The notes under the pieces: generated by a model
What the model saw: only the letters and a program-made list of their open reading frames with translations
Databases searched by the model: none
Told to the model about the DNA's origin: nothing
Position numbers and translations under genes: made by a program
Origin: Dimorphilus gyrociliatus
Lineage: Eukaryota > Animalia > Annelida
Direction of reading: 5' to 3'
Length of the DNA stretch: 64,000 bases
Assembly (NCBI GenBank): GCA_904063045.1
Contig: CAJFCJ010000015.1
Span: forward strand, 1,309,034-1,373,033
Shown: in pieces, positions 3,509-44,200 of the stretch
How positions within the stretch are numbered: the first letter of the stretch is position 1
Layout: each line of letters opens with the position of its first letter

Positions 3509-4453
<945 letters not shown>

Positions 4454-17200: not shown

Positions 17201-20200
17201 AGAATTCACAAAAGCAAGAGGAAATGCTTAAAAGATATTCTCACCTTTCTCGGACGTTAGAGTACACTAATCAATATTTGCGGACAATTTATTGTTTTAC
17301 TGTGCACAATCACTTTCTGTTGTAGTTTGTGCTTTTATTTTCCACAATATTGTTTACTAAATATTTAATTTTGCTTTTCCTGCTAATATTAAAAATTTAA
17401 TTTGGGAAAGAATTATAGTAATATGGTTCTTAAGTTTGGATGTTGGGAAAAATTTAAATAGCTGGTGCACGGAGATAAATCTAATATCTTTGCTTTAAAT
17501 GGGAGAGGCTTTTATAAGCCTTCTTTTTCTAATCAATTGACTTTTTGAACATTCTTGTGTAATACCTAGTTTTTGTTTTGTCTATTTATTTGAAGCTATA
17601 GAATTGAAAAATGCTTTTACGATATTTGTACACCTTACTGTTATGAAACAATAATACTTTATCAATAATAGAAACTTTTTACTTATTTTCAAAGCTATTT
17701 TTAAAATTTATTTTGATTTTCATAGATGAGCAAGAACGTGTTCAAAAGAAGACATTCACCAATTGGGTAAATGCATTTCTTACAAAATGCCAACCGCCTA
17801 TGCAGATTTCGGACCTCTTCCATGACTTGAAAGATGGAGTTGGATTATGTAAATTGCTTCAAGTATTGTCCGGTGAGCGTATCAATTTCGAACAGGGTCG
17901 AAGAATGCAAAGAATTCACTACGTTACCAATGTAACTAAAGCCATTGACTTTTTAAAGAGCAAAAATATTCGTTTGGTCAACATAAATGCAACTGACGTA
18001 GTTGATGGTAAACCCGCTATTGTCTTAGGATTAATATGGACAGTAATTCTGTATTTTCAGGTATTAAAAAATAAATTTTTACACATATGCTAAATATATT
18101 GCTACTTTAGATTGAAGAAAATACGAAAGCCTTAGCAAGTCAACAAGCTATTGCAAATGACGAAATTTTGCATGCTACTGCAGTTACAGCCCTTAATAAT
18201 GCCACAGACACCAAAGGTATCAGTCCTCAAAAGAAAAAAAAGAAAGAACTAGAGTCAGGAAGGTTTCGAACTGGTGCCAAAAAGGCCATGCTTGTTTGGG
18301 CTCAAAAATCCGTCACTCAGTAAGTTTACTTTTACCTGAAATTTAAAAATACTTTATAAACATTGAGCGATGAGAGTTAGATTATAAATTTTAGTAGAAA
18401 ATGGTTGAAATCATTTTAGAGCTTTCAAGAGATTATTACTGAGCTAGATTTCTTATCAACTTATATTTTTTTCAAAACAACAAAACTTATTATATTTTAG
18501 TAGGTTATTATGCTGTTGTGTCTTTTTTATCATCAGAAGTTCAAATGTTTATGGTTGAATTTTTATAATCAACTAAGCTCTTATTCTCCTGTTTAAGGAA
18601 CAACTAGTAATATTTAAAATATGAATAACATTGACTTGTTGTAAGAAGCCGTGTATACATAATAGATTAAGTGGATTGAGTAAGATTTTTCTCAACGATA
18701 GACAGTATCTGTACTATATATGATCATTTTTACCTAAAAATTACTAATTTTCTTTACTTCTACGATTTCATAGACTTCTTTATGAACTTACTCAGTAGTT
18801 TCTTATTCGTTGTTGGTTACGTTACAATCGACCCTAGCGAGTATTGCGGTATTGATCTGTATTGGAATGCTGCCAAGATATCAGGCGCTTTGTTCAAACT
18901 TGTCTTTACTGCTGAGATATTACCGTCCTGTCTGCAAAAATTTTGTTATTAGGAACTTTTTCGGCATGTTATTGAAAGAGTAGAGTGGAGAAAAGGAGTA
19001 GTGTGTAGATGGTCGTATTGCGTGCGTGAAAACAAATAACTATCCATCTAGTAACGACTGTTCTACATACTTTTCCCTTATATCCCTCAAATTATTGTGA
19101 CAATGGAAAGAGAACCGAAACGACATTCTTTTAGAAGTAGCAGAAGTGAAAAAGTACAGAAAAGTAAACGTCTCAAACCATCAATAGAAACTTCTTCAGT
19201 TCATTCTGAACCTGCACATAGGATAAGAAAATCACAGTCTCCTGATTCAACGTGTTCCTCAAAGTCTGACGGTAGTAAAAAGGATATGCTAAAATTTATG
19301 ATACATGAAGTTCAAGATCTTCAAAAGCAAATACATGAGGAACTTGGAACAAAAGGAACACCAAGTAAAATTCCAAGAAAGGGAAAAGGATATAGAAAGG
19401 CTGCCTCTCCAATCAGTTTGAATGATTCGATAAAAATTATGACCGCTAAATCTTCGGCACTTTCAGAAGAGAAAAATGATATCTTTTTTTTTGACAAACT
19501 CAAAATAAAGCGAATTTTAAAAGTGTTTGTGTTGAAAATTGTAACTTAGCTTATTATTATATTAATCAAGCAATTTTACTTAACTTTGACCATAATAAAA
19601 CTGTTTGATGTATTTCAGGCGATTTGGTATACCTGTTAATGATTTTGGGCCTTCGTGGAGAGATGGGCATGCCTTTAACGCAATGATTCATAACATAAGA
19701 CCAGAGCTCGTTGACATGAGGCTAATTGAAGACCGCAAGAATGCTGAGAATTTGAAATCTGCCTTTGACACCGCTGAAAATTATCTAGGCATTCCAAAAC
19801 TCTTAGATCCTGAAGATGTTGACGTTGACCGACCTGATGAAAAATCAATCATGACCTATGTTGCTCAATTTTTGCAAAATTATCCTGACCCAGATACAAT
19901 CTTGGATACTGAGACTGAGGTGAAAATTATTTTTCAACGAAATATCTGTATAAATTTTCTTGATCAGTAAGATTCAAGATATTTAATTTTTACTCGCGAC
20001 AATTTAAGGGTACACAGCAGGCACAAAAAGAAAGACCAAGGGATTATATTAGTTCTTATACTTGGTGTATACAGACTAAAATATCTTCTATAAATCAGGT
20101 TTTTTAAATCTCATTGTCCCTCTTCTTTATTATAGAAATGTTCTGGTGTTTGTGCCCAATACATATTATACATATTAGATATGTATATATAATTATTATG

Positions 20201-23200
20201 TATTTTTTTTGAATCCCGTTTAAATTGTTAGCTATATTTATTTTACCCATTTTGCATGTGCCGTTGCGAATGGTTGCCTATAAATGCTTATTGACTTAAT
20301 GGTAAGATTCACATATTTACTGTGCAATTGTCAACTAAGCTATTTAATATACTATGTAATCTATCTTATAGCTTACTAACTCGGTATTGTCTTTTTTCTT
20401 CTTTCGAATTTTCATTGACATCTTATTATAGTTGAAGCACTGGATTTTTGTCATTTATAAGAAAAATTAAAAAATAATTTTATTTCCTAGCTTATGCTAC
20501 AGCAGTCCTCAAATCCTCTAGAAATTGAGAAAGGAGAATATCGCTTGTTGCTGCGGTGGTTGAATGATGCAGATAAACGATTAGAAGTAGTGGACAATCC
20601 CATTCAAGATCCTGTTAAAGAATATCAAGTTTGTATTCTTAAATGATTGCTAAAGATTTAGTTGAATTAGTTTTTATAGCGATAGGTAATATTTATGTTT
20701 ACCAAATCATAGCAACTTATAGGCACGTAGTACAAACATTTAAGTTGCAGATGGAGCTTTTTTACATAGGCCTAAAAAGCAATACTGTGGAAGGCACAGC
20801 CTTCACCTTGAAAGTAGGAACACTCTTACTTTAGAGATGTATAGCGTTTTATCTTCTATAATATTAAGATGGAATAAACGCAAATAGCTGTCTAATTTAC
20901 TTTTTCTATTCATCCCGTTCAAGATGAACGTTGATAAAGATCGTAGCCGAGTTGTTAGAAAGGTCGTTAAATCTTAAAGGGTTACTTATACTTAGAATAT
21001 ATGCTATTTTGCAGTTATTGTCTTTAATACAGTATAACATAATTCTGAAATTCTAAAAATTTTTCAGACGTATCTTAGATTAAGAGAGGAGCACAGAATT
21101 AAAGAGGGAGTTTATGAACGTCTGATAACTCGTTCAGAGTCTAGTGAACTTGTTGTTCTCAATGAAAATGACATAGCTGTAATGAGACAAAGATGGTCAA
21201 ATACAACGGCTAGACTTAATTTATGGAGATGGAAGCTAGATAGCGCTCTTCCCGGTGAAATTGGCCGTTACGGAGATTGGCTTCATAGAGCTGAAGAAAC
21301 ATTGAAGGATCCAGAGTTAATAAAAAAAGTATCGGATTTGATGACGTTAAAAAGTGAATTGAGCAAAAGAAGTGCTATTCTCGATGGTGCTAACCGAGGC
21401 AAAGCTGTTCCAGAAGCACAATTAAATGACATGATATCTCGAACGGAAGTTATGTCACGAAAAATTAATGCACACATTCCGTTGTTAGAATTTGAAGAAG
21501 CAAAATCTAAACTACTTGAATACTTAAATCAAATAGAAAACTCTCTTAAAGAGTGCGAAAAAAAGCATGGTGAAGTCTCTGAGGTTGAACTAGCAATGCA
21601 GCAATATAAAAAATCTATAGGTGATGAAAAGTCCCTAAGCGAAAATTTCGAATCTCTGAAAAACAATATGAAAGAGAAAGAGCTTGTTGCAATATCAGCC
21701 GGCGTAATAAAAGAGAAGGATGCTGAGGATTTCATATGCTCTACTGACGAGAGATGGAGACAGTTACAAGTTGAATTAGGTTCCGTCCAAACTATGCTAC
21801 AAGAAATTATTAAAAATTGGAAACGTTACAATGCCTTACGAGACCTATTTGCTGTTTGGTTAAAAGAGGCTGAAGATATGGTTCATAGGTCAAGCTTAGA
21901 GGATGAAAAAACAGCGGTATGTACTAATATAAGGTTTTTAGAGGCTAAGGAAATATGTTATATTACTATAAACACACTTTAGATTGAGTATAAAAAATTT
22001 CTTCGAAAATGGAGTATTGTAAGTCTAACGTAGACCTTTATCAAGTCCTTTGTTTTTAAGCATTCATTATGTGTTATGCCTATTCTAAACAAATATCAAA
22101 GAACATTTTTGAATTTTGAGAAAATGTTTTTTTTGCATGTCTGTTAACAGTCTTTTTTAAGTGCTATGACTGTTGCTGTAAACGTGTTTGTCTTTACCCA
22201 ACTATTCCGAAAACTTCGCGGTAGTTTTCTACAAACACTACCTTTACGGGTTAAATCCATAACCCATTTTATTTTGCTAATTTACTGATAGTTCTTTTAA
22301 TTAAATTACCCTCTAACAATAATTGTTTTATTCAGGAATTTCTCTCTAATTTACCTCAATGGAAAGATAAACATGAAAAGTTAAATGAAGCAGCTAATTT
22401 CCTAATCGAGACAGTTCAAGAGACTGTTGGAACTGATATTAAGAGAATGGTTTTATCTATTAATAGGAGATGGAAAGATATATATGACCAAGCGTCGCGT
22501 TTATCATCAACAGCCAGCGTTCGATCTGGCTACAACAATAGAATGAAATCACTTGAGGAGATTTTGCAGCTCCTCGAAAGTTTAACAAAAGACTGTGGCT
22601 TGGAATGTAGGGGTGAAGTTCTTAGGCCATATGTACAAAGTCTACAAGAAGGGGTCGACAGAGAGGAGAAACTAGAAAGTGACTTTAAAGATCTATCCCA
22701 AATCGCAAAAGGCTTGGTTAAAGAAACATCTAGTCAACAAGTGAATGAAATGCTCAGCTTCTTAAAAAGTATAAAAGAGCGAATTGTGATAGTGAGGAGA
22801 GCTCTTCCAGTAAAACTCAATGATTGCAAATCATTACTATCTCTAGTTAATAATTTCGAAGGAGATGTTAATAACCTACAAAAATGGGTTACAGATGGCG
22901 AGAAAATCATACTTTCTCATAGGATTGATCCGAACATAAATGACGTAGAAGAAAGACTAGAAAAGCACAAACGTTACTTTGGGGCCAATATGCAAAAAAT
23001 GAAAAGTTATTTATTGGAACAAACGAAGTCTTATAAGAAGATTTCCACGGAAGCTCATGCTATAGGTCTTGTATCACATTTTATTGAGGCTTCATTGATA
23101 TCGTTGAATGAACGTTTTCAAAAGCTTGAGAAAAATTGTGAAAAGTGGGAACAGAATTTACGTGATTCATTAAATAAATGGCAGCGTCTACAGCAAAGAG

Positions 23201-26200
23201 CCGAGCCTCTTGAAAACTGGATTAAACTGGCAGATACTGCTTTAACTTCCGATGCGTCTGATTCTATTTCAACAGAAGTAATTCTCGAACAATATAACAA
23301 CTTGTTAAATCAAGCTGATCAATGCTATCTTCAAGATTTCCAAACGGCTGCGTCTGATTTACTTAATACTCTCCACCCCAATGACACTCAGGAACTAAAA
23401 GAAAGTGTAGATATATTATGTGAAAGATGGTATGATGATAAAGAAGCACTATTAGAGAAATTATCTCTTGTAAAATTTGCTAAATGTGAAGAAGACTTAA
23501 CGCAGAATTTTCACGTTGCCGAGGAAACATTAAAGCAGTTAGTAAACCATCAACAATCAGGTGTCGACTGCAAGCAACTACAGCATAAACATAGTGTTAT
23601 TTTTCAAGATTCCCAGCTCGCACCGTCATGCAAATTATCATTGGAAGAGCTCCAACAATTAGCACATAATGTCCCTTCTCATAAAGAAAAACTTTTATTA
23701 AGGTTTCAACATCATAGCGACCATTGGGCAAAATTGCAAAAGAGCATTGATCATGTTGGAATTCAGTTACAAGATTCGGAAAGACGCTGGAACATTTATC
23801 ACAAGAGACTTGACGACTTTGTGGATTGGATGAATTGTGTTGAAAAAGTTATAGAAGGATTGGAACACTCATCAACTACCTCTGAATACAAAGATACTTT
23901 AGCAAAATTCAATGTAAGTGTAAATTCACACTTGTTTTTAAACATTATTCTGACACTTGAAAGCTTCTATAATGCTGTCATCTAAACCTGACGTATTTCC
24001 ATTATATAACTCAATCACATTTTTCAAACATTTAAGCCCCTAATTTTTCAAATGTTTCTTTTTACAAGAAATTTTTATACATCTTCATACTTTGGAGGAA
24101 TGACATGTTTAATAATTTTTTACAAAATAAACTTTCATTTCAGGATATTGCTCAGAATATCGATCAGCACCACGTTGACGTTGATTGGCTGGAGGAAGAA
24201 TTTAACAGTTTGTCTCAGTTGGGTGGTCATTCAAATATAGAAAAGGAAAGATATCGTTTACAGCAAATCTTAGAAAAATATGTCAAATTATCACCCATTA
24301 TTGAAGTTACGACGACTAAAAGCTCAACTGTCGTTAAATGTATTGAATATCGTGAAATTATTGAACAAGATCAGCTAAACTGGCTTCGAGAAGCAGAAGA
24401 AGTATCAGAACGGTCCGTGGATTTAGATGATTTAACTGCAGTTCAAGTTCTTCTTGGAGAACAAGAGAATATATTAAAACGCTTAGAAAATGAAGAGGAA
24501 GCAATAGAAGAACAAATTCGTGAGGGTCGAAGGCTAGAGAATGAAAAACATGCTCCAGAATTTGTGAAAGCCACTGTTGATGAGCTGGAAAATCGTTGGA
24601 GAGAAACTGCTCAATCAGCAAAGGCAAAATATGATAGGCTCAGAAATGCTAAACAAAACTGGCTGGAATTTGAAGAAGCATCTAAAATTGTTAATGAGTT
24701 TGTTAAGAAAGTTGACTCTGAAATGCAAAAGTCATTACCAGCCAGCTCTGGCTATCAGGCAATAAATTCTCATATACAAGCGAAAAAGGAGCTGTTAGAA
24801 GAATACTGTAAAATCCATCCAATTATTGAGAATATGGAGAAGTTAAAATCTGAGCTTGGTCTACAGGCAAGTCCTCAAAAGAAGAATGAAATAGAAGAGG
24901 AGATAGTTGACTTAAAATTGAAATTAAAAAATGTAAATGCCAATCTAGGCGATAAAGTTGGTGAGCTGGAAACTTCAGAGAGAGAATGGAAAGAATTGAT
25001 TGGACGAATGGATGCCTTAGACTCTTGGCTTGAAGAGCATGAGGCCTCCTTTGAACGAATTCAACAAATGGCTCTACCGTCTCCTGAGGAACGTCTCGGC
25101 AGAATGAAGGCCCTAGGTGACGATATTACACAGCATGAAAGCCATATTAATCATATGGAAGATGACGCAAAGACTTTAGCCAATGGATTTCGTTCCCGTG
25201 AAACAGCAAATGTAAAATCAAGAATTTCTAGTCAAAAAGCCAAGTGGAGAGCATTAAGAGATCGAATAGAGAGAGCCGGAAATGTCCTCGGTGGAGAAGT
25301 TGATCATTGGAATGAATATCAGAAAGCCCTCTATCAACTTATGCCTTGGCTAGAGAGTGCAGAAAAGAGTCTCATTTCACCTTCTACCCGATTTGTATCG
25401 CTGGAGGACTGTTTGGAGCAAAGTTCTCTTCATGATCAGTTAAAAAATGAGCTAACAACACATGAAGTATTATTCGAACAATTCATAAATGAAGGATCTC
25501 ATGTTGGAAATGAACCAGGAGTTAATTCTCGACTAGAGGAGCTAAAAAATCGGTGGAATAAAATAGCCAATAAAATTTCCGATAGAGATGCAGTTTTTCA
25601 AAAAGCTAAAAAAGCATGGGAAGTGTTTGACACTGTATCTAAAGAGCTTGAAAATAGTCATTCGAATATTCAAGGATCAGTAGTATGTCAAACAACATTA
25701 CCTTCAGTGAAATCAGCCGTACTTGAAAGAGAATTGAAGGCCCATAAAGAGTTGGAAGAAAAATTACATGATAGTAATGCTAAAGTTGCAGATTTACAGG
25801 CGATGCATTCTGCTATTGAAGAATTTATTGATCCTGTTGCAGCAACATCACTTTCAGCCAGAACTGAAAATCAAGTTCAGTTATGGAAAGAATTACAGGA
25901 GGAGGCTAAGAGGAAAGAAGCTATATTATTCGACGAACTTAAACATGTTAAAACTGTGGAAGAAAAAGTAAATACTTTTGAAGGCTGGTTGAAACAAAAT
26001 AAAGAAAATCTAAAGCAAACTTGTAAAACAAGTACTGATGATATTGAGGAAGGATTGTCAACAATCAGGGTTGGTATAAATATATATAAGATATTTGTTG
26101 CTTAGGTTGACTTATTTATTTTAGAATGCTCATCAAAATATTTTGGATGAGAAAGCTACTTTGGATGTCATTGAAGACCAAATTAATTCTCTATGTACCA

Positions 26201-29200
26201 AAGCCACTCCCGAAGATGCTGAAATTTTAAGGGAAAAGTTACATAAATTAAAAAATACTTACACAGAAGTAAATAACACGGTAGAGGCAAGGGAGGATTT
26301 GCTTTTACAATGGCAAGCTTGGACAGAAGCTCACAGGGAAATGCAGGCTCGCACACAAGCAATTACAGAAAAGTTGGACAATGAGGATATGAGTCAAACA
26401 CAGTTAGACCGAGCTGCTACAAATTTAGATACCATTAGAGGGGAATTGCAACAATGGGAAACGTTAAGACCCAATGTTGAAGAGCTTGAAAATATTTCTG
26501 GAATAGTAATAAAAGAAGGATCTTCTCGTAGAACTCTATCGATGCAAACTATGCTAGATGAAGCTCGTGTCAGTGCTGTTAGAGCTTCTAAGCTGCTTGA
26601 TGATAAGCAAAAAAGAATGAATGAAATAGCAACACTGTGGCAAGAATTTGATCAGTTGCGTAAACACCTTGTTAATGTTGCTGAGACTGTGGAAAACACG
26701 TCAAATGGAATTCATGTAAAGCAGTCTGACCAGGAAGGAGTTAGACAAATACAAAATGAATTAGAAGATTTGAACAACAGGTTACATGATCATGACCAAG
26801 ACTATCAACATTTACGAAATATGGTTAGGAGAATAGCCCGAGAAGACATTGAACATGCTACAAGGGCTAATGAAGAATTAGAAAATATTCAGACTGCGTG
26901 GGATGCTGCAAATAAGGCAGTTGTTCAGAAACGATTTGAGGTTGATGATATTTTGAAACACTGGAAACAATATAATGAAGCCAAGAGTGCCTTAGGGGAA
27001 ACATTACTCGACATTGAACCTTTTATACAAGAACCGATATATTGTGTAAGCGCTGATGAAGTAAAGAGCAAGCTGGAAAGAATGCAAATGTCGGAGAGGG
27101 ATTTACGCACTGCCTGTGCCCAGTTGGAAAATGTCGTTACTCGTGGGAACAGTATTATAAATTCAGTTTCTCTGTTGCCCCTATTTGATTCAACCTTACT
27201 TAGGGATGAAGTGAGCGGGGCATCTGAAAATTTTGATTCTTTAAACAAAGATTTAGTTAATAGAAAACAAATTTTAGAAAAACAATTAGCCTTGTGGAGC
27301 AGTATTACCAGTGAAGCTGATGAAGTAAAAGTATGGTTGAATGGAATGACCGAAAAATTTAACAATCTACAGGAAAGGATGCCAGAACCCAGCTCTGCTA
27401 ATGCTTCTCTCTCAAAATACGAACACGAAAGAGGACATTATGAACATTTGTTGGATGACTTAAGTCTAAAATTAAACCAGCTACAACAATTAAATGAAAA
27501 TATGAGTATTCCATCTATTCAAGTACTCATTCAGACTTTGGAAGGACAAATTGTTGAACTTGGTCAAATACATGAAAATCTGAGAGCTACCGTTGAGAAT
27601 TTAAACAGCGAAACAAGTGCTCTAGAAGACGAAGTTGATACTTATAGTAATTGGGTTGAAGACGTAAGGGAAAAGCTGACACAGTTAGATGATATTCAAG
27701 AAGACGGTGATCAACTAGTTAAGAAGGTTAGAGAAGCTAAGACACTACAAGGAGAGCTTAATAATCAGGAAAAAAAGTTAGGAGAACTACACTCGAAACA
27801 AAGCGAATTGGCTAAACGCTTTGAAACAAATTCACCAATTACTATAGCCTCAGCCGATGTAACTGTTGTCAAGAAAAAGCATTCTGCAGCATTAGCCAGA
27901 GCAACTGTTTTGGAGAAAAATTTGAAACGGGTCTTAGAAGAGAGAGCTATTGAAGCAAAACGAGATCAACAAGTTTGGATGTGCAATGCTTCAGATAAAG
28001 TTAATTGGTGTCTAGATAGTGCAGGAGATAGATTTAGTGTCGAAGCAAAATTAGCAACAATCAACGAACTTTTTAAAACTTTACCAGATGGAAAAGACAA
28101 AACTGACAATGCTTTAAAAAATCTACGCCATTTAGAAGCAATCCATGACAGGCCAGAGAATATTCAAGGAGAGGCCACAAAAATAAAGGAAGAATGGCAA
28201 AGATATGTAACAAATGTCGAAAGAGCCAAACTAGATCTAGACAGCCTCATAGGAAAATGGAGAGATTATGAAGAAACTCACGAGACTTTGAACAGTTGGC
28301 TTAAATCTGTGGATGTTTCTGTACGTAAAGAAACGGCTTTGATGTTACCTTCCTTAATAACGAAACAGGGCCATGTGGAAACGCTTCAAGATATTGAACA
28401 AGAAATATTAAAAAAGGAACCATCAGTTGACCAGCTTAAAATTCTAGCGAAAGAGTTGTCTGAAAAAGGTGGAGATGACGTTAGAGTTATGTCATATGCT
28501 AATCAAATTGCTACAAAATTTGAATCGCTTTCTCAAAGTATAAACTCGTCCCTTGAAAAAAGTATAGAAAATAAGAAAAGTCACGAAGCTTATTCTAATT
28601 GTTTGCAAGATGCGAAAGATTGGTTAGATTCGACGAAAGATAAACTTAACAGAATTTCAAATCGACCATGTACTGATCAGAATGCTGCGGCAGTGGAACA
28701 AGAAAGCCTACAACAATTGTCTCTATCAGCAGAAAATGGAGAAAGGAAAATAAAAGATGCCATCAACTTAGGAGAAAATGTTTTACCTAACACTGCTGCT
28801 AATGGAAGAGATTCGATACGAAGAGAGTTAAGAGAATTGAAGGATGAATGGAATAAACTACAAGAAGATATGAATAAAAGCGAAAAAAAGACAGAAAGTG
28901 TAGTTGATTGCTGGAAAATATTTGAAGCCGACCATAATCAATTAGTGGCGTGGTTGGCAGAGGTCGAGCAGGATGTTTATCAAAAGACTCCTATTGAATA
29001 CTGCTCTTCTCTATCAGAAAAACGAGGCTTTTATGAACGACTAAATCATATATCTGATGATATTGATGCGCACAGTCGGCTTATTGATTCTTTAGAAGAG
29101 AAGCGCTTGTCTTTGTCTAGTTATCAAGCTAACTCCAAGGCTGCTGCAGCAAAACAACGATATGAAAGACTAGTTAGCAGCGTCTCAGATAAAAAGCAAG

Positions 29201-32200: not shown

Positions 32201-35200
32201 ATCATATAAAGTTTGAAGAAGCTAAGCAAACTGTTGAAGAGTGGCTGAAAGCTGCAAATGAAACACTGCAATCTTGTGAACACTTTTCGACTGATAAATT
32301 GAGTATAATCGGAAAGCTGGAAAAAGTTAATAACTTATTTAATTCCAAACACGAAGGGGAAAATCAGATTCACGCTTTGAAAAATATGTTGCAAACAGTT
32401 CAGAGTTCAACTGATCAATCAGGCAAGTCTATATTTAAAGAGGAGGTAGAAACCGTTGAAAATTCTTGGATACAATTTTTGTGTCATCTTGAGGATATAT
32501 TAAACAAACTCAAAGAACATAAAGAAGATTGGGATAAATTTTCTTTTATTAATGAACAATTAGAAAAAGAACTTAGAGATATTGAAAGACAAATCAGAGA
32601 TATTTCTGTCAGCAACACTTTGGAAGAAAAAATCAAATTGAAAAACACTATATCGGTAATATAAAATAAGTACAAAAAACCTATTAGTATATTAAAACTC
32701 TTTTCCATATTTAAAGGACCTTTTAGCACAAACCAAACGGCTACAGCCATCAGTGGATGAGGTGAAGCAACGTGCTAGGACTTTATCGGAAGGGTCTCTC
32801 AGTACGACTGATGCTAGAATAACTACCAGCATTGAGCAATTAGGAGATAGGTATACAAACCTTAAAGCTAGAATTGAAGATGAAGTGAAAAGATCTCATG
32901 AAAATGTCATTGATCATGAACTATTCGAAGTTAAAATGTCTGACTTTGAGAAATGGATAAAGGAAATAAAGACAAAGTTGATAAGGCCCGTTTCTGCTGG
33001 TTCTTCTCATCGTTATGATTTAGCTGCGAGGCAGAATATGCTTAAGGACTTAGTATCTCAAATACAAAGTGGTTCAAGCCGTATGGCTGATGTTATTGAA
33101 GCTGGAGAAAAGTTATATCCACATACAGCACCTGAGGGAAGAGAATCGATTAGACAAAAAATACGCGCTTTACGAAGTTCGTATGAGGATGTGTATGATG
33201 AAATTCATAAACAACAACGTTCTCTCGAAGCATCTTTTATTCAATGGACCTCACTAGAGGAAAGTATTGAAAAAATAACTTCCACCCTCAAGAAGATTGA
33301 ACAACAAATGGGCGAGGAGTCCCCTCTCTTTGCAACTCTACATGAAAAGAGAAGTGAGTTAGTAAATTTAAGAAGTACAAATCATGACCTGACTTCGTTG
33401 ATGCGAGTTTTGGATACATTAGAAGAAAAAGCTCAATCTCTACTAGAAACAGATCCCACGCCCGCAGAAAATATAGCCCAACTGCGGAACAAGCATGAAA
33501 GACTTTCTTCTGTTGTGAAGGAAAGACTTAATTTATGTGAAAATTACGTTGAAGACGACGAAAAATTTCAAAACGCATTAGCTGAAGCTAATCAATGGTT
33601 AGCCTCACTAAGGCAAAGATTAACACTTTGTTCAAATCCAACTGGTGATTCTCACGTCATAAAGAATAAATTGGATAGATTGCAGGTAATTTGTTTCATG
33701 AATTTCGAATGAGTATTGTTTTAATTTTCAAAATTTAAAACATGTCAATCCAGGCTCGTTTTGTAAGTCATAAAACTAATTTTGTGTGTGTTTTTAACTC
33801 TCTGTTAGTTAGAAATTAAGCTGTCACAAAAAATATTCTGATTTCTCCTTTCAATATCTATATTCTTAAACTACATATCGATTTTCTTACTTACTTATTG
33901 TTTATTAATAGGAAACTGAAACTTTCAAGGACGAGGGTCTGAAACGAGTTAACAATATTTCTCTCGTTGCTGAAAGAGTCATTGCTGGATCGACTGCAAG
34001 TGGTATTAGTGCAATTAGGCAGCAAGTATCAGCATTAAAGAATGAGTGGGATTCCATACAGTCAGATATTGTAAAAGCTAAATCCGAATTAGAACGCTGT
34101 CTTCAACATTGGACTGTTTATGAACAAATTCGAGATGACTGTAGTCAAACCCTCAGGAAAACGGAAAATCAGTTGTCTCAAAGTATGGACCTCGCAGATA
34201 AACGTATCGAAAAAGAGGAAATAAGTGAAAAATTACGAAATCTACAACAAGATTTAAGGTCAAAGCAAATGGATATGGATAAGCTAAGTGATCAAGCTCA
34301 AATTATAGCTCGACAATGTCAAGAAAAATCTGTTACAAATTCTACTTCTCGAACAATGTCAGCTTATCAAACTTTATGCCAAAAAGTAAATGAGTCCTGT
34401 GCAAGGTGGAAGCAGTATGCAAAAGACCATTGCGATCTAGATGAGAAGATAACAGAGTTTTCATCTTGGTTATCAGAAATTGACGAACAGCTCAGAGATT
34501 GCTCATCTCCGACTGCTGATAAATACTCTGTTCAGAGAAAATTAGATAAATTAGGTCAATTAGTTGCTCTTAAAACTGAGGGATCAACTCTTATTGGTTC
34601 ACTACACGATACTGCTCATTCAGTTTTACCAAATACTTCTGGGACAGGTAAAGAGGAAATTCGTGCCTCCGTTCAAAAATTACAGAAATCTTGGGATATA
34701 ATATTAAATACTTTAAATGAAACAAGAACTCGAATGGAAAATGCATCTTCATTTTGGCTGCTTTATGATGAATCCGCATCGACTGTTAGAAGATATTTAA
34801 GGGAAACAGATAATAGCTTTAAGCAACTTATGTCTCACCTACCCTCAAATTTACACGAAAAGAGAGCTTTAGTTGATCGTGTTAGACTTGCTCAGGCCAA
34901 TGCCATAGCTCAGCAAAGTAATGTAGATACATTAATCTCAAGGGGTCGTCTCGTGTCAGAATGTGTTCAAGATGACACAATTTTAAATGAAGCTGAAAAA
35001 TTGGCTAAAGAATATGATATGATTTTAGATACCTTGAGGGAATACTCTTCAAAGTCTGAAAGGTTTGTTAACGATCATGAGAAATTTGAACAATCACTAA
35101 CAGACGCTCATTCCTGGATTCAATCCACCTCTCAACAACTATCAGAATGTCGGGACTTGTGCACTGATAGATTAACTCTGCATACAAGATTTAATAAAGC

Positions 35201-38200
35201 CAAGGAATTAACTCAAATGAAGAGCATAGGACATGAAAAAGTAACTAAAGTTGAGGACACGGCAGCTGCTGTTCTCCAAAATACATCTCAATCTGGAAAG
35301 GATGCAGTAGAACAGCAATTAACAGAGCTTAAAAATTTACTCAATAGGTTGGATAAAGACGTAGAAGAAACTGCAATAAAAACAGAGCAAGCAGCAAATA
35401 GTTGGACAGAGGTTAGTGACGACCTAGAAAATATGTCCACTTGGTTGAACGAAGCCGATACTAAATTAAAAAGCGAACAGCAAAGCAAAACAACATTGAA
35501 CGAAAAATCTTCTTCAGTTAACCGCCTCAGTGATCTACTAGCAGATGTAGAAGGCAAACAAGTCAATATTGAACAAATTTCAGAGAAAGCACACTCAGAA
35601 CTAGCTGGAGATACAAAGCTAACTTCGAAAGTTTCACACTTAGCTGCAAGACATTCTATTTTACAAACGCATGTGACAGATGCATTGAAGCGATCCCAAC
35701 AGCATGTTTCTGATCACGAACAGTTTGAGAAAGCTCTTAAGGAGGCTCAAGCAAGTCTTTCACATGTTGAAAATAAACTAGACTCAATAGAGAAGAATTT
35801 AGAAACAGACGATAGGGCTTTCATAGCTGCTCAGTTGGATCGTTTAACACATTTGCAAAATAATGAACGAGATGTCTCAGGAAAGATACGTTGCGTTCAT
35901 ACTTGGGCAGACAAAACTATGGCAACTACAGCGCCTCATGGTAAGTTTAAAAAAAGTCCAATTTTGATATATTAATTTTATCTTTAAATAGGGCGTGAGG
36001 ATATCAGATCAAAAATTGACCTACTGCAAAAAAATTGGGATGTTGTAACTGAGAGGTTATCAGACATTAGGGTTTCTTTAGATAATCGACATTCTCAATG
36101 GACAAGCTATGAAGACTCAAAAGCAGCTATAATAAAATGGATAAAAGAGACTGAGCGTCGGCTTCTTCAAATAGGGGATGATACAAAGCCAGAAGTTGGA
36201 GAAAAGAAGAGCCATATTCATTCCATTAAGGTAAACACAAATATTTGATATTCAACTTCTATGTATTTCTTTAACAGTCTGTTCAACATGATATAACGGC
36301 TTATAGTCCAGTCTTAGAGTCTTTTTCTCAAAAATGCTCAAATTTATCAAAAATTGAAACAACCTTAGATCCTCAATCAGACTATGAATCTCTAAAAGAT
36401 CGTGTTACGGTAAGTCAACATAAATAGTAGTATAAACCTTGGATTTTTTAAATAACGGAGATATTTCGTTTTCGCACAACCAGAATATTTTAAATCGACT
36501 CGAGAATGAACTTCAAGATCATGAGGCATTTGAAGAATGCTCCGCTCGTTATAGATTATGGATTAGAACTGCCAGAGAGCATTTAGCTGCTTGTGTGGAT
36601 TGTTTCGGAGATCGTGCATCTATATTGTCTAAACAAGAAAAAGTCCGGGTAAATAAAACTTAAAATTCATTACTTTAGATTTGAAATGTCTAAATTTCCA
36701 TCGTTGTTAAAAACAGAGTATTTCTGTCTCTCTTGAAGAAGGAAGGTGTCTATTACTTAAAGCCGATGAGGCATGTAGGAATGTTAAACCTAAAAATTCC
36801 ATAACTGTTAAACACGAAGTTGAGACAATGAAAAGAGAATTTGAAGATCTGGAAGAAAATGTTCGATCAGCAGCAGCAGAACTCGAAGCCTGCTGGAATA
36901 AATGGGAACAATTTGAAAGTTCACACCAATCTCTTTCGGCTTGGTTGTCTGATAAACACAATGAAATGCAAGATTTAGATTCTGCTTCAGGTTCTGACCT
37001 ACAGGAGAAGGAGAAAATATCTGAAGAAAAGTCAAAACTACGAGAGGATGTACTGCATTATCAGTCAGAGCTGGATAAACTTAATTCGGCTGCAGCAAGT
37101 CTTCTTGCTTCTTCATCTGATACAAGAGCTTCACATGTTAGCACTCAATTCACTTCCAGATATCAAAATCTACTTGCAGCTACTACAGAAAGAGCTAGAA
37201 TTTCTCAAATGCAAACTGAAAATCACAGACGCTATGATGAATACTTATCAGAGGCCCGGAACTGGGTTGATAATGGATTAGTAAAATTGGAAAGTGTCAC
37301 GCTTCATGAAAGTCGTCGTAATTTAGAAAATCAGACAGCTATCTTGAGAGAATTAGTAGCGAACATGGAACAAGGAAGCAGAAAATTAAGAAATGCTTTG
37401 GAGCAAGGAGAGAAAATTATGTCTGAAACCAGCGTACCTGGACAGGCTATTATCAAGGAAAAAATCAGTAACTTACAGTCAGATTTCGAAACACTTAGAC
37501 AAAACGTTTCTTCAACCAAATCTGAAATTGAGACCAAAGCCAGCCATTGGATAAGTTTTGAAAAATCTATCGATCAACTTCAAATTTCGTTGCGAGATGC
37601 TCACAAAAGGAGTTCAATGATATCCTTACCAATTGACTTAGATAATATGAAAATAGAATTAGAAAAAGTGAAAACCCTTCAACATGATGTTGATGTCTAT
37701 TCTCGCCAAGCTGAAACCCTTAGAAATAAAATAGATAATCTAGGCAAAGTGCCAGAGGAAATCGAAAGTATGATTGAAGAATTTAACCAAGTTAGGGATG
37801 ATGTTGGGGAGAAACTAACTATCATTACGGAAATGGTAAACATGCATAAAGCTTATAAAAATGAATTCAAAACTATTCTAGAATGGGTAACTAATGTGAA
37901 ACTAGAACTTCAAAGACTCGATACCCCTTCAGCCACGACTCTAGGTGAAATCGAGACACGGCAACAGGAACTGGAAAGCCTCAGAGATAATTTAGAAGAG
38001 GGAGACAAACGTTACACTAAAATTATATCATTGAGTGAGGATGTTTTTGGAAGAACATCAAAAGAAGGACAGAAAAGGTTAACAAATGAACTCAATTCAT
38101 TGAAAGATGAAATAGATTCTCTTCATGTTTTATCTAAGAGAATTGACGAAAATCTAATAACTTGTCGAGGATACTATGAAGCATTTAAGGATGCAAACTT

Positions 38201-41200
38201 AGATTTTGACACTTGGCTTTGCGACTCTGAAGATAAAGTAAAAACTATAGCTCCTTCCTCTCCGAATTTATCCATTGATCAACAAAGAGACTTAGATAGT
38301 GTGCTGGAGGATATTTGCAACCACGAGAATCAATTAGATGATTTACGGGAGAAATGTGAAACTATAATTGCAGAAGGAGCTGATCCCAGTCAATTAAATG
38401 GGGTTCTTCAGCTAGCTGCTCGATATCATTCTTTAAAAACAACTGTTAAGGTATGTACGAATATTTTTATTCTTTCTTTATCATTGCAAATTCAAAGAAC
38501 TACATCATTTAAACAGTGGCTGGTTTATGTAAGTTTGCATGCACAAAAAGTTTTAAGATGTCACTTAAATCACTTTTTTCATTAAAAATCATATATTTTA
38601 GAGGTAAATTTTAACTTTTTTGTAGGATGGTGCCCGAAAGGCTCATGATGCTCTTCGAGACGAAAAGTCTTTTAGAGTAGCCGTGGAAGAATGCAAAGCT
38701 TGGCTCCAATTAGAATTGGACAAAATACGAAAGATACGCAATACAACTGATGGATCTTGGGACGAACTAGACTCCAAGCTTCAAATTACCACCAGAGTAA
38801 TGAGTGAACAAGATGAAGGACTGCGGAAAGTACAATATGTTGTGGAAAATGGTCAAAAGTTATTATCTTACTTGCCAATTGGTCAACAAAAGGCTAGAAT
38901 AGAAAGAGAAATGGCTGATATTTCAGATACTTGGGATGAACTACAAACTGAATTGAAGACAACTACCGAGAATCTAAAGCTAGCTCGATCCAAATGGAGC
39001 ACTTACGACGATGAACATGCTCAACTTTTAGATTGGTTACCTAAAGCTGAAAAGGAAATCGAGCTATTGTCGCAACCCGCAGCAGATTTATCGGAAAAGA
39101 AGACTCAAGTAGAGCGCTCTAAAGTATTTATAAAAGAAATCGAGGATCAAGAAATTCGATTAGCAAAGATAAAAGCTACGACACATTCTCTTAATGAGAA
39201 CGAAAACGTAAGACAAAATGTATTAGATATGGCAGACAAATTACAACGTGTTCGGACACAAGCCTCTTCAATTTCCGAAGGACTACTTAAAGCTTATGAA
39301 ACTCACCTAGAGTACAGAAATGAGTTGAATGACTTTCAACGCTGGTTACTAAATATATCGGGAAGAATTGGGGAAATTAATACTTTAGGCGCTGCAACAT
39401 CCTTACCTAAAGCCGAACAACAGTTAAATAGGCAAGATGTTATTTCCACAGAAATTTCTGCACAAGCTGATACTTTAGATTTCTTACAAGAGAAAGCGAA
39501 CAGTTTATGTGTTATTAGTACAAACCATCCCAATTTTGTCTCGTCCATTAAAACTCAGATAAATGAGATTGAGGAGAGTTTAGAAGCGTTAGATTCAACT
39601 TCTTCTGGATTAAAGGTAATATTGCTCTAATAAAATTATTTTAAGGTTTTGTAATATATTTAATAAAAAATTTTTAGAATCGCCTGAACTCATGTGTCAA
39701 GAAATGGAGAGAACATTCGTCCTTATTGGGAAACTGCAATGATTTTATTGATCAAGAAGTTCTTGTTTGGTGTGAGACTCACTCTGATGCTCTTATAACA
39801 GATGTATCAGTAATTCAAAAAGAGTTAGCTCAAGCTCAGAATTTCTACAGCAAGTTAAGAAATTACAGAGAACAACTAAATAATTTGGTTCGAGCTGCGT
39901 ATACAGCTGCTCCAGCAAATGCCATATTTAGCGAGTCTTCTTTGGAAGAAACTGGTTTAAATCGTAATCTGTTGACAGCTATGACTAAACTCGAAAACGA
40001 AATTGAAAAGCGAAAAGGTATTTTGTTGAAATGGGAAAATGCAGACGAATTCAAGAACAATTTGTTAGAGTGGTTGTCAACAAAACGAAGTGAATTGAAA
40101 GAAATTAGCTCAAAGAAAGCAAAGTTGCATAGGCACGCTGCCCAGCTTGATTTATCAAAACTTCAAGATGTCAGAAGTGAATTAGTCGATCGACGACGAG
40201 CAATAGATGACTTAACAATACAGTATGATCAAATTGAAAGCAATTCATCTGAATCAAATCAAGTGAGAGAAAAATACCATGACTTGATAGAAGATGTCGA
40301 GGCTACATTGAATGCGAGAACGAAACTAATGAATGATACAAGTTCTTATGAGGATCTTCGCAGTGATGTTGCCTGCGCTCTGGACTCAATTGTAACTGAT
40401 ACAGAAAGAATATCAAAACACTCACAACCTCTTAAAAATAGGGTAGAACATCTAGAGGTAAGTAGTTTCCGGCTTGCTCGTATAGTTAATTAGAATATAG
40501 TTGGGTGGTAAAAGATTTTCTTTCTCTATCCTTTTTCTAACAACATTGCAAGAGTATCTGAGAAACTGCACTATTTCAACAGTATGACTGTATGTCTGTT
40601 TTTATAAATCGGGTAAGAATCAAGTAATCCTTTTACCACCCACTTTCTGTATTACTTTATTTTCAAGTTTCTCTGAAATTTTTCTTTTGCCACGTGACTT
40701 TAATAAATTGCGTTTGCGCCTAGAAAGTATTCAAACTCGCATTTTAATAAACAACTCCTTGTGAACATTTTTCCTATTTACGTGCTAAATGATGCTTCGC
40801 CAGTTTTTATCATTTTTATGAAGAATGGAGCGCACAGGCTTTCTCTGACGGTAAGTGTCTTTTTTTTTGACGGTCGTGAATGGTGGATGAAAGTGTACAT
40901 ATCGGATGAGTGTCTAAAACATACACATAATTCTCAGCTTGACTAACTTTTCAAACTCGTTTTTCAACGAATGACGCTAAACACTCTCAGCTTGTTTGTC
41001 TATAGATCATCAAACTTTGGTTATATTTAATTCATTACTAAAATATATAACAATTGATCTGTATTAATTATCTTGAAAAAATGGTAGTGATTGAGATATT
41101 TTATTCAATGAATTTGAGAAAGTGTTAACATGTTTTTTTTACAGCTCTCCAGCAATAATACTCGTCCTCTAAGGCGAATCTTACCTAATGTCAACAACGC

Positions 41201-44200
41201 CTATAAAGATAGAATATCAGGAAGACATCCACAACATTGCTCTAAATTAAAAAGAAAAACAGAAAGCGATGAGAGTGGTTATGCGGAAAGTCCAACAGTT
41301 GATCAAACATTGTTAGATGATGCTCGACCAGTTACTGTACAAATAGAATGCGATGAGATTGATAATATTCTTCAAGATACTAATAATATTGATGGGGATG
41401 ATTATTTTAATTCGTCAATTGAGACTATAAAAAAGCAAACAATCGAGTTTATTAAGAAAACGAAAACTCACACAAAAAGGATACAAAAGGATGATTCTAT
41501 CTATACAGATCTTTCATTTCAATCATCCAAGCAGGGTAGTAAAATATTTGGGAAAAGTAAATCATTTGATACTTGGGATTCCCATTCTTTCCAACATGCA
41601 GATACTGAAAAGGTTACTGAAAACTATTCACGCACGCAATACGACCATCTACACACTATTCCTAGTATAAGTGTTCAAAATAACCCTTATGATTTTATAT
41701 CGAGAAACTCTTGCAATGTTGGTGTAGAAACAACTGAAGATGAAAGAATCCCAAAAAATTCTTCGACTCAAACCATCAATGAAAGCCAAGAAGCCAATAG
41801 TTCTTGCGAACAAGCCCCAACAAGTCATTATGATTTTCATGAAAGAAAAAATACGAAAAAGAAAGATCAAATAAAAGATATACCCAAAAAAGGGACTAAA
41901 AATCAAGATCCCAATAGAAAAAATCTTATGAGGCTTATGCTTTCACAAGTCAGAGATTTAAAATCTCAACTTCAACCATATATCGCCCAGAGTGAAGAAC
42001 ACACATCCCGTTTATCTACCTCAAAAACTAAAAGAAAAGTAAGGACAAGAAATCCCACGGCTCAGCGAAGAAATATTTCATTGTCACCAGTAAATAGAGA
42101 TCGCAAGAGAAGGCTACCTAACTTGCCAGAAAATGTGTTAAGTCCAAGACGTTTACCTGCTGCTCCTTTTGATCATCCCCAAAGTACTTTTAAACCAATT
42201 CGTTTGCCTCCTCAACAATTTCAACCGATGCCACCAACGTGCATCATTGTTGCAAGTCCAGCAAGAGAGGAATGCGACGATATTTGCAATAGTTTATCTA
42301 GCTCTAGTTTTTCGTGTTCTTCCTTTTAGATTTTTAGCTATTAATTTATGTATGCGATTTTTCCTGGTTTGAATTTAAATAACTCTGTATTATTTATGGA
42401 ATAAATGAATTAACATGTCTAATTTTTTATTTAATTGAATCCTAGTCACGTGGCAATTATGATCGAGATGTCCAATACTTAAATATTAATTTCCTTGTTT
42501 TTTTCAGAGAACATTTCAGTATTTATCCGAACAAGAAGCAAGTATAGATATATTAAAAGATCTAGCTGGAGTAATTAAGAATCAAGTTAGTTCTCATGAT
42601 GGCATTTTGGTAGACGAAAGAGTATCAGATTTAGATAGAAAAGCAGTGGATTGCAAAGCTAAAATTGAAAAGAACTTGAACAATTATCAGAAAATTGTTG
42701 TTGAATATGATAGTGTTACAAAGAAACTGGAGGCTTTGTGTGCTTGGCTAAATGTTACTGAAGCAACCGTTGAGTCTATGGAACCTATGGGAAGTTCTCC
42801 AAATGATGTTCAACTAGTTCTTGATGCTCTGGAAGCTTTAGAAAACGAAATTATTGAGAAAAAACAAGAGGTCATTCAAGCTGGAGAATCTCCTATTCTA
42901 TTAGAATTAGGGTCTGCCGAGAGAACAATGATACAACAGCGTTTAGACAATCAGATCACCCAGCATTCTAATTTAATGATGAGCGTGGCAGATAAGAAAC
43001 GACAGTTACTAAATGCTCTTACTTACCTCAAAGGATTTCAAATAGAAATGAAATCTTTTGAGGATTGGTTGGTCAATTCAAGAAATTTGCTGTTTAAAGC
43101 CAAAAATCCTCAATCAGTTACTGAACAGGCTAATCTAATGAAAACTATTCTAGATGATATAAAAGATCATAAAATTCTAATCGAAAAATTACAGAGAGAC
43201 ACTGCTACTATAGCATCACTCTGTTCTGTAGAAAAGCGAGAAGATTTATTGAATCGCCTGCAGCAGATGAATGATCAGTATGATGAACTTAAGTGTTTAG
43301 CTGAAGAGAGTACTCTAGAAAACAAAAAATCTCTAAACAGCCTAAAGTCTATTTCTGGAGATGTTGAAACTGTTCATAAATGGTTAGAAGAAACAAGCTC
43401 TAATTTAAAACCCCTAGTAATAGAAAACATTAACGTAGGCTCTCTTGAATCTGATAAACAATATCATGATAATCTCCTTCGTACGGCTGATGAAATGATG
43501 ACGGCTCTAGATTCTATCAGAGACAGAGCTTCCGAAATTAATGGTTCTCAAAGATTCGAGATTCTTGAAAGCATTGGAAACGAATATGAGAATGTTGAAT
43601 ATCTAAAATCCACCTTAGAGCAGAGAAAAGCAGATATTGAACGGGCTTTGCATACTCACTCTCAAACAGAAGGCAAAATTACAGAAGTGCAACAAATTTT
43701 AATTGGCAAATTAAATGAGCTAACAAAACTTTCAAAAGCTCCCATAGGGCCCAGTCAAGAAAGTGCTCGTCGACTTCTTATTCAAGCAGAGAGACTGGAA
43801 AGGGAATTAAGAGATTATAAACCTCAAGTTGAGGAGACAGTTAGTTCTTTATCGGAATTTTCGAAGGGAGGACACCAACGAACAGAACAGGAAATGACAA
43901 AACTTGTTAAACTCAGTAGCGATGTAGAAAATGCTTGCGAACAGCTTCTGTCGAAATTTAAAAGTGCGGCAGCTCTACGAAGGACATATGCCGAACATAG
44001 AGGAGAGATTGAAACAGTTATCGATCAAATGTATCAACAAATTGAGGCTGTAGAATATGAAGGTGTTCCTGTTCACACAAAATTAGATCGATATGAAGCT
44101 GTCCTTGAAACAATAGCCGCAAAAGATCCACAATTAGGAATATTACAAGATCGAGGAGAGCAAATTAAAGCTGATGGAACAGTAGCTGATAAGGATGTAA

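Follow-up and report, generated by a model that had tools for sequence, protein, structure and literature searches.

Retrogene or nested-gene capture is the source of the new terminal exon of TRIM5-CypA in owl monkeys. Mammalian nesprin-1 and nesprin-2 form KASH-less variants via alternative termination, where read-through into a retained intron adds a few residues (e.g., 8 amino acids, aa; Rajgor et al. 2012, PMC3388047). In pre-mRNAs, exons, alternative terminal ones among them, are looped out by conserved regions that are complementary over long range (Kalmykova et al. 2021, PMC8052449). A TQT motif in a disordered chain constitutes the usual anchor of LC8 (DYNLL) but is insufficient alone, and many TQT peptides do not bind (PMC6607443). 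The nesprin locus of the annelid Dimorphilus gyrociliatus is compared here with these systems. The window, i.e., the whole stretch of DNA that was analysed, comprises 64,000 nucleotides (nt) of contig CAJFCJ010000015.1 (assembly GCA_904063045.1, positions 1,309,034 to 1,373,033 of the forward strand). Two nesprin introns in it hold open reading frames, ORF-A and ORF-B, which contain similar 19-aa amphipathic motifs; a 37-nt segment just upstream of ORF-A is complementary to one inside ORF-B.

The explanation favoured here, with moderate confidence in it as a whole, joins a helix of shared descent, ORF-B as the captured tail of a gene family, ORF-A as a nested and diverged relative, and a 37-nt complementarity under selection. 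A complete intron-less copy of a gene from a small disordered-protein family occupies a nesprin intron of 2 kb. Splicing from the rod donor (40457) joins 41145 in phase and transcripts stop shortly past the conserved stop codon; the product is a KASH-less protein of about 6,400 aa with two calponin-homology (CH) domains and a rod, ending in the family tail. ORF-A probably represents a shorter, strongly diverged derivative of the ORF-B module, produced by partial duplication of ORF-B-like sequence. Its own ATG would serve for translation, on a short transcript that is unspliced, starts by a conserved block, and ends just past the stop. The helix may be a self-association or docking element, which in the family may act together with LC8 bound at TQT and could bring the small ORF-A protein together with the nesprin-B tail or free-standing paralogues. 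The 37-nt complementarity may have been kept by selection for RNA-RNA pairing, coupling both products or influencing the use of the terminal exon.

ORF-B as a terminal exon of nesprin and its gene family

The following features, all on the forward strand, define the host gene and ORF-B.

17709 to 18090, forward strand: nesprin CH1 exon (Pfam CH PF00307, E=1.6e-22; orthologous exon of species 2 at L008:2714-3094)
19619 to 19967, forward strand: nesprin CH2 exon (Pfam CH, E=1.4e-19; acceptor tttcag/G)
41145 to 42329, forward strand: ORF-B, alternative 3'-terminal exon of 394 aa plus stop, intron-less (RNA junction, orthologues, paralogue alignment)
41766 to 41774, forward strand: TQT codons, candidate LC8-type anchor (T208, Q209 and T210 invariant in 5/5 family sequences; predicted local distance difference test, pLDDT, of the region <50)
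41916 to 41972, forward strand: motif B, RKNLMRLMLSQVRDLKSQL, signature helix of the family (AlphaFold2 helix 256-287)

The N-terminus of the host gene encodes tandem CH domains (PF00307 at 17647-18090, E=1.6e-22, and at 19599-19967, E=1.4e-19; profile searches were run exon by exon). They are followed by a SYNE-type spectrin-repeat rod, recognised by Pfam Spectrin_SYNE1, Spectrin and Spectrin_Anc-1 on the orthologous exons of a related dinophilid (species 2). The rod is covered by one 17.9-kb spliced RNA contig ending at 40457; the 3' end of the gene, which would encode any KASH domain, lies outside the window. The introns holding ORF-A and ORF-B measure 1.3 and 2.05 kb, far over the median of 66 bp in the published compact genome of D. 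gyrociliatus, which is without trans-splicing (PMC7854359).

In species 2, the nesprin locus is found in the same order on a 33-kb Logan contig (loci L008, L007, and L004). As synonymous sites are saturated between the two species (proportion of synonymous differences, pS, about 0.7), any remaining nucleotide-level likeness is taken to be under selection. RNA evidence comes from two runs: X3, whose metadata are missing, and X1, an independent coral metatranscriptome with contigs 99% identical. X3 is regarded as RNA because its 17.9-kb contig is without the 62-nt intron 39614-39675.

ORF-B is a used alternative 3'-terminal exon on the rod of about 6,400 aa, giving a KASH-less end. X3 contigs join the rod donor in phase to the ORF-B acceptor (40457 to 41145, GT..AG), and a competing skipping junction (40457 to 42508) and an unspliced form are also present. 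ORF-B contigs end at 42342 (X3) and 42365 (X1); X3 is without cover over 42349-42505, while X1 covers 42112-42365 and spliced rod exons. The AATAAA at 42399 lies beyond both ends, and the ORF-A contig ends at about 19554. A loose contig end at 41575 was dismissed as a k-mer artefact from another locus, on contig C9.

Conservation delimits the same exon. The acceptor is kept (ttttttttacag before CTC here, tttttttggcag before CCT in species 2), protein similarity to species 2 begins exactly at this acceptor, and no ATG is conserved. Full-length alignment of ORF-B with its orthologues P0001 and P0002 gives 41-47% identity and an almost invariant motif, and all three proteins end in an identical C-terminus (...SLSSSSFSCSSF) followed by the stop. 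The rates of nonsynonymous and synonymous substitution (dN and dS) are 0.48 and 1.55, respectively.

The original prediction regarded the shared motif as unrecognised; instead, it is the signature of a small gene family, two free-standing members of which were located by profile search. A genome-wide six-frame search with a profile built from five motif segments retrieved two further loci (E=1e-8 and 1e-6), both two-exon genes and both annotated, as DgyrCDS12860 (100% identical to the query locus) and DgyrCDS397.

G000:C1:1547855-1550932 (L013): DgyrCDS397, two-exon free-standing paralogue
G000:C21:895797-898874 (L014): DgyrCDS12860, two-exon free-standing paralogue

ORF-B is collinear with both paralogues over the full length at 26-32% identity, with all shared blocks present: acidic PVQIE, a basic helix, the invariant TQT, the signature helix, RRL, and the Cys/Ser-rich end ASP.R..DD.C...CS. 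The tail that it encodes thus runs from an acidic/basic N-terminal block through TQT, the amphipathic helix about 50 residues on, and RRL(P) to a Cys/Ser-rich C-terminus. Both paralogues possess an intron between TQT and the helix. ORF-B is without this intron and therefore fits a retro-copied or otherwise captured gene; it also has about 60 extra N-terminal residues relative to the paralogues. From these alignments, we infer that ORF-B may have originated by retroposition. Free-standing family genes are likewise found in species 2 (P0006 and P0007).

DgyrCDS397 and DgyrCDS12860 each contain two TQT motifs (FSTQTF and VQTQT) and end in DDDCS.C.SCSCS.R, which may constitute a lipidation or metal-binding tail. 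Besides the two orthologues already known, a large profile search with the ORF-B alignment brought up a single repetitive protein of 2081 aa and nothing else. In public contigs, exact-protein look-ups gave no record for either ORF-A or ORF-B (records of this genome possibly fall outside their scope), and the ESM Atlas held nothing usable for DgyrCDS397. When ORF-A, ORF-B, and the paralogue exons were scanned against Pfam, sub-threshold noise was the only outcome (SPICE, DUF6880, FlxA, and GP120).

The shared helix and the coding sequence in the CH1-CH2 intron

The counterpart of the motif lies between the CH1 and CH2 exons.

18796 to 18993, forward strand: noncoding block, probably the promoter-proximal region of the ORF-A transcript (93-94% identical between species; L008 about 3745-3945)
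19103 to 19549, forward strand: ORF-A, coding sequence of 148 aa that begins with its own ATG; probably a gene of one exon, nested in the intron (conservation, dN/dS, RNA contig)
19277 to 19333, forward strand: motif A, KKDMLKFMIHEVQDLQKQI (surrounding 28 aa 100% identical in species 2; AlphaFold2 helix, pLDDT 73-91)

The two peptides had been reported to align without gaps as the main helix-like segments of otherwise disordered frames, and the translations at both positions bear this out, with 6/19 identities and a BLOSUM62 score of 45. When the frames 19055-19546 (164 codons) and 41118-42326 (403 codons) were compared with residue shuffles, the best ungapped segment (score 54) was reached by 0.3% and the best 19-residue window (score 45) by 0.25% of 2000 shuffles; blastp between the two open frames yields E=0.003. 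Motifs A and B are reciprocal best matches among the 46,185 stop-free 19-mers of the whole window in six frames. The next-best 19-mers score 27 and 33, versus 45, and come from spectrin-repeat helices, about 12,000 aa of which were in the search set; the likeness of the motifs therefore exceeds generic helix-to-helix similarity. When the ORF-A alignment is set against the ORF-B family in a profile-profile comparison (hhalign), P is 1.1e-4 and the probability 56%. A profile from ORF-B-type sequences only retrieves ORF-A genome-wide at 19.8 bits (E=0.084), which is marginal genome-wide and strong within the locus.

The structural part of the claim stands as well. AlphaFold2 assigns ORF-B a mean pLDDT of 46, and the sole stretch above 70 is helix 256-287, which holds the motif; in ORF-A, the most confident helix (74-97, pLDDT 73-91) lies on the motif. 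In both ORFs the motif is the best-conserved block, it is kept at the orthologues of both, and both ORFs are present in RNA. A profile search of the PDB with the motif gave chance short matches only. The TSC-box of TSC22-domain proteins shows a similar pattern, K.HLM......[VI]..LK.Q[IM], but membership was not accepted: ORF-A, ORF-B, and the paralogue exons have no hit to Pfam TSC22 (PF01166) at E<=1, the PDB profile search found no TSC22 chain, and the helix stops at a proline with no leucine zipper after it.

Common descent of the two helices by partial duplication appears probable, and we place good confidence in it. Besides the motif, collinear nucleotide remnants are found on the same strand and in the same order: 19040-19066 is a direct copy of 41655-41680, and it is followed by 19169-19190 and then by the motif. 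The segment 19169-19190 matches 41764-41784 at 20/22 positions; it encodes the invariant S-TQT-I in ORF-B and RLKPSIE, in another frame, in ORF-A. Convergence or chance likeness between unrelated amphipathic helices in ORFs of independent origin would agree with the 6/19 identities, the marginal genome-wide match, the hhalign probability, and the fact that the signature helix is the only part of ORF-A alignable as protein with the family. It is nevertheless rather improbable: the motifs find each other first among many helical 19-mers, their hydrophobic register is equal, each is the best-conserved block of its ORF, and the row of remnants (the 37-nt inverted copy described below, the direct copy, the 20/22 match, and the motif) extends outside the helix.

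Several observations identify ORF-A as protein-coding sequence in its own right. Its species-2 counterpart, between CH1 and CH2 (L008:4046-4549), is 68% identical in aa. This similarity sets in at the very ATG (MEREPKRHSFRS), whose start context is good in either species; the 28 residues around the motif are identical. With dS above 2 (saturated), dN is about 0.2, as in the rod exons, giving a dN/dS of about 0.1, and ORF-A is therefore protein-coding and under purifying selection. The SxIP-like SKIP of ORF-A (19364-19375) reads NKVS in species 2 and is thus unconserved.

A 554-nt X3 contig, the reverse complement of 19001-19554 and retrieved through the repeat that it has in common with ORF-B (see below), runs unbranched across both 19110 and 19524, the only donor able to join CH2 in frame; by contrast, contigs break at the ORF-B acceptor. 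The 30-mer 41627-41656 is entered by contig records 14 and 17, with record 16 as its one unbranched exit. As two contigs enter and one leaves this shared 30-mer unbranched, no contig continues upstream of about 18999. Judged by this topology, ORF-A RNA would start within roughly 100 nt upstream of about 18999 (tip clipping allowed) and end about 5 nt past the stop.

These data bear on the proposal that both ORFs are alternative terminal exons of nesprin, so that 'CH1 only' and 'CH-CH plus rod' proteins would be capped by the same helix. ORF-B behaves exactly so: its in-phase acceptor is confirmed by the RNA junction, and it caps the CH-CH plus ~6,400-aa rod without KASH. For ORF-A, the AG at 19109-19110 is in phase with the 18319 donor in this genome. 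This acceptor (ggaaAG/A, 19110), however, follows a weak tract and lies inside the conserved start of ORF-A, in codons 2-3 (ATG GAA AG/A). In species 2 the corresponding sequence is ATGGAGCGAGAG, and its whole open stretch, from the upstream in-frame stop to codon 5, is free of in-phase AGs. Conservation sets in at the ATG, and the RNA contig crosses 19110 with no sign of splicing. The terminal-exon model for both ORFs is thus very unlikely, and the modular capping envisaged in the original prediction survives for ORF-B, and the CH1-only cap via the 18319 donor is not supported. With conservation from its own ATG, no in-phase acceptor in species 2, a contig unbranched across 19110, and an apparent start near 19000, ORF-A looks like a nested single-exon gene.

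Over the initial 470 nt of the intron, the two species cannot be aligned, and conservation starts about 200 nt before the inferred start of ORF-A RNA; 18825-18940 is the longest highly conserved window (94% identical) of an intron that is otherwise unalignable. The noncoding block 18796-18993 is probably the promoter or leader of ORF-A, and it has no Rfam match. Within it, a conserved cccTAG (18837) precedes a frame of 37 codons that is in phase with the 18319 donor. There is almost no synonymous change in this frame, and the constraint therefore acts at the nucleotide level. The possibility that 18838-18949 is a duplicated CH2 exon was rejected, as no similarity was found and 63% of shuffles score as well; that its synonymous sites hardly change speaks against simple coding too.

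Alternatively, ORF-A RNA could be the tail of a nesprin transcript with intronic polyadenylation (CH1-linker, stop at 18321), in which ORF-A would be an untranslated passenger of the 3' untranslated region. Mammalian nesprins have many retained-intron ends (PMC3388047), and contigs cannot strictly show the strand or true 5' end of ORF-A RNA. This passenger role is highly improbable in view of the dN/dS of about 0.1, the conservation from the ATG, the lack of any X3 contig continuing upstream of the 37-nt repeat, and the unalignable 470 nt that precede the conserved block. A nested, translated gene remains the preferred reading of ORF-A.

The 37-nt complementary pair and other conserved elements

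The region just upstream of ORF-A and a segment within ORF-B are complementary to each other.

18994 to 19030, forward strand: IR-A, 37 nt, reverse complement of 41627-41663, just upstream of ORF-A (at least 19001-19030 within the RNA contig)
19040 to 19078, forward strand: degenerate direct copy of ORF-B sequence, 3' arm of a local hairpin with IR-A (fold and local alignment)
41627 to 41663, forward strand: IR-B, partner of IR-A inside ORF-B, encoding SRTQYDHLHTIP

IR-A and IR-B are complementary at 36/37 positions, and the single difference pairs as G.U. They are the only two copies in the 78-Mb genome, their arms span 22.6 kb, and the predicted duplex has 37 bp and -71 kcal/mol. Species 2 keeps both arms (36 positions, one mismatch). 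Two positions have changed there on both arms: in ORF-B, CTA has become CCA and ACT has become ACC, and the arm ahead of ORF-A has changed to match. Three of the four discordant positions are G.U-compatible. The repeat stays at 36/37 while the surrounding duplicated sequence has decayed to a similarity of z=3.3, almost background. The SRTQYDHLHTIP peptide is kept in three species but absent from the free-standing paralogues, and therefore fits a double constraint on IR-B. No A>G differences were found in the contigs at the repeat, as adenosine-to-inosine editing would leave, low-level editing being below this view. A metagenome scan for the repeat core matched one GC-rich bacterial contig (L010), which was set aside as a chance match.

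Base complementarity and covariation suggest direct RNA-RNA pairing as the best reading of the 37-mer, either in trans, between the 5' end of ORF-A mRNA and ORF-B transcripts, or in cis in the pre-mRNA. The fuller proposal, in which a duplex of the ORF-A mRNA 5' end with the ORF-B exon is kept by compensatory evolution and couples two products of one locus with the same helix, is tentative and in our estimate rather unlikely in its complete form. If true, coupling could proceed via co-localisation of the mRNAs for co-translational assembly, or one transcript might control the terminal-exon choice or the translation of the other.

The repeat could also act via a small RNA or as a DNA element, without a long RNA duplex, which is possible if somewhat unlikely. 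As a small-RNA source, IR-A and its degenerate neighbour would form a hairpin in the style of a microRNA or small interfering RNA precursor, yielding small RNAs against the ORF-B exon. The local fold of 18985-19090 (-30.8 kcal/mol, z=-4.0) favours such a hairpin, as does the perfect antisense arm beside a decayed sense arm, as guide and passenger strands would have. On the other hand, the species-2 hairpin is weaker (z=-1.2, large internal loop), complementarity over 36-37 nt goes far beyond the needs of a 22-nt guide, and no Rfam family matches. As a DNA element, both copies would be the same protein-binding site; in a further version they would be functionless and kept alike by gene conversion. 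Concerted changes on both copies fit either of these as well as RNA pairing. Yet a DNA site of 37 nt would be long and a sharp-edged conversion tract of that size very short, and the G.U-compatible discordances weakly favour RNA pairing.

Several points weigh against the overall explanation. RNA support comes mainly from the single run X3, counted as RNA solely through its spliced contigs, and the ORF-A transcript ends derive from assembled-contig topology, while contigs cannot strictly show starts, ends, or strand. The ORF-B-family profile finds ORF-A only at E=0.084 genome-wide, with hhalign at 56%, and short amphipathic helices may converge. Partners of the helix are only proposed; a co-fold of the ORF-A and ORF-B helices scored 0.12, which is no answer and evidence neither way. 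Covariation of the repeat comes from two species only, where concerted evolution or a shared DNA element fits equally well. Finally, no family relatives were found outside dinophilid-like samples, and there is no studied homologue to lend a function.

Further elements that may act at the RNA level surround ORF-B.

40480 to 40660, forward strand: conserved structured element of the intron, shortly after donor 40457 (identity of 93% across 108+40 nt; fold z=-3.8)
40687 to 40699, forward strand: upstream arm of a 13-nt pair flanking ORF-B, TTGCCACGTGACT, containing CACGTG, complementary to 42444-42456
42444 to 42456, forward strand: downstream arm of the 13-nt pair, AGTCACGTGGCAA, complementary to 40687-40699

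The structured element comprises about 165 nt and starts about 20 nt past donor 40457. An invariant 13-bp stem (40502-40514 with 40630-40642) encloses a conserved loop containing a GGTAAGA pseudo-donor; no Rfam match was obtained for the element. The 13-nt pair is perfectly complementary, and in species 2 both arms have changed, to CATGTG/CACATG. The pair would be either a stem that loops out the exon and favours its skipping or two identical E-box-type DNA sites, the latter because it is built on the palindromic E-box CACGTG. A conserved ACG/GTAAGTG (GGTAAGTG, about 40850; 40846-40858) is located mid-intron upstream of ORF-B. It could be a decoy, a U1-binding site, or the donor of a small unannotated exon; the RNA contigs contain no junction from it.

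Elsewhere in the nesprin gene, the 115 nt of 47069-47183 are 91% identical between species, an unusually strong nucleotide conservation within this gene. Of these, 35 nt form the end of an intron and 80 nt the beginning of the giant exon (encoding ELTRQVKALKDRISTVSNRM). Upstream of the CH1 exon, several blocks in 14846-17120 are conserved with species 2, at 70-79% identity across 200-690 nt and more than 90% in short stretches; 5' exons or the promoter region of nesprin may account for them.

Comparison with known systems

As in LC8 clients, the invariant TQT of the ORF-B family lies in disordered sequence and precedes the sole helix, here by about 50 residues; the paralogues carry two TQTs. 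This TQT-plus-helix layout resembles that of LC8-stabilised dimers, and by this analogy the family would be a candidate LC8 client. Unlike LC8 clients, ORF-A is without TQT, although its TQT-coding nucleotides survive in another frame. A candidate function, self-association or LC8-assisted docking, may thereby be assigned to an unnamed disordered annelid family on the basis of its sequences.

Similar to pairs of conserved complementary regions (PCCR), the 37-nt arms are conserved complementary segments with compensatory change, placed in one gene by an alternative terminal exon, and the 13-nt arms on either side of ORF-B are arranged like those that promote the skipping of looped-out exons, terminal ones included. 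Unlike PCCR-type pairs, one of the 37-nt arms, 22.6 kb apart, is coding and the other stands at the 5' end of a short transcript, so that pairing in trans is possible. The complementarity links a short nested transcript to the alternative terminal exon of its host gene. As the arms are short, unique, and easy to mutate compensatorily, they offer a clean test case for base pairing between mRNAs of one locus.

With TRIM5-CypA, the locus shares an intron-less gene copy (ORF-B) in a host intron, spliced to upstream host exons to give a chimeric protein. It differs from a plain retrocopy of that kind in the about 60 extra N-terminal residues of ORF-B, and its retroposition is put forward from the missing intron. 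In this concrete example, a giant cytoskeletal rod has gained a functional tail through capture of a nested or retro-copied gene, and species with saturated synonymous sites still share the arrangement.

The closest resemblance in the host gene is to the mammalian KASH-less nesprins, where likewise one giant CH-spectrin-repeat gene gives truncated proteins from intronic alternative 3' ends. KASH-less nesprin ends usually add few residues, whereas the Dimorphilus end comprises an entire gene-family member: a dedicated acceptor adds 394 aa that belong to a family with free-standing genes. Unlike in the mammalian nesprin genes, moreover, a truncated relative is expressed separately from another intron, and the pair is tied by a unique, covarying complementarity.

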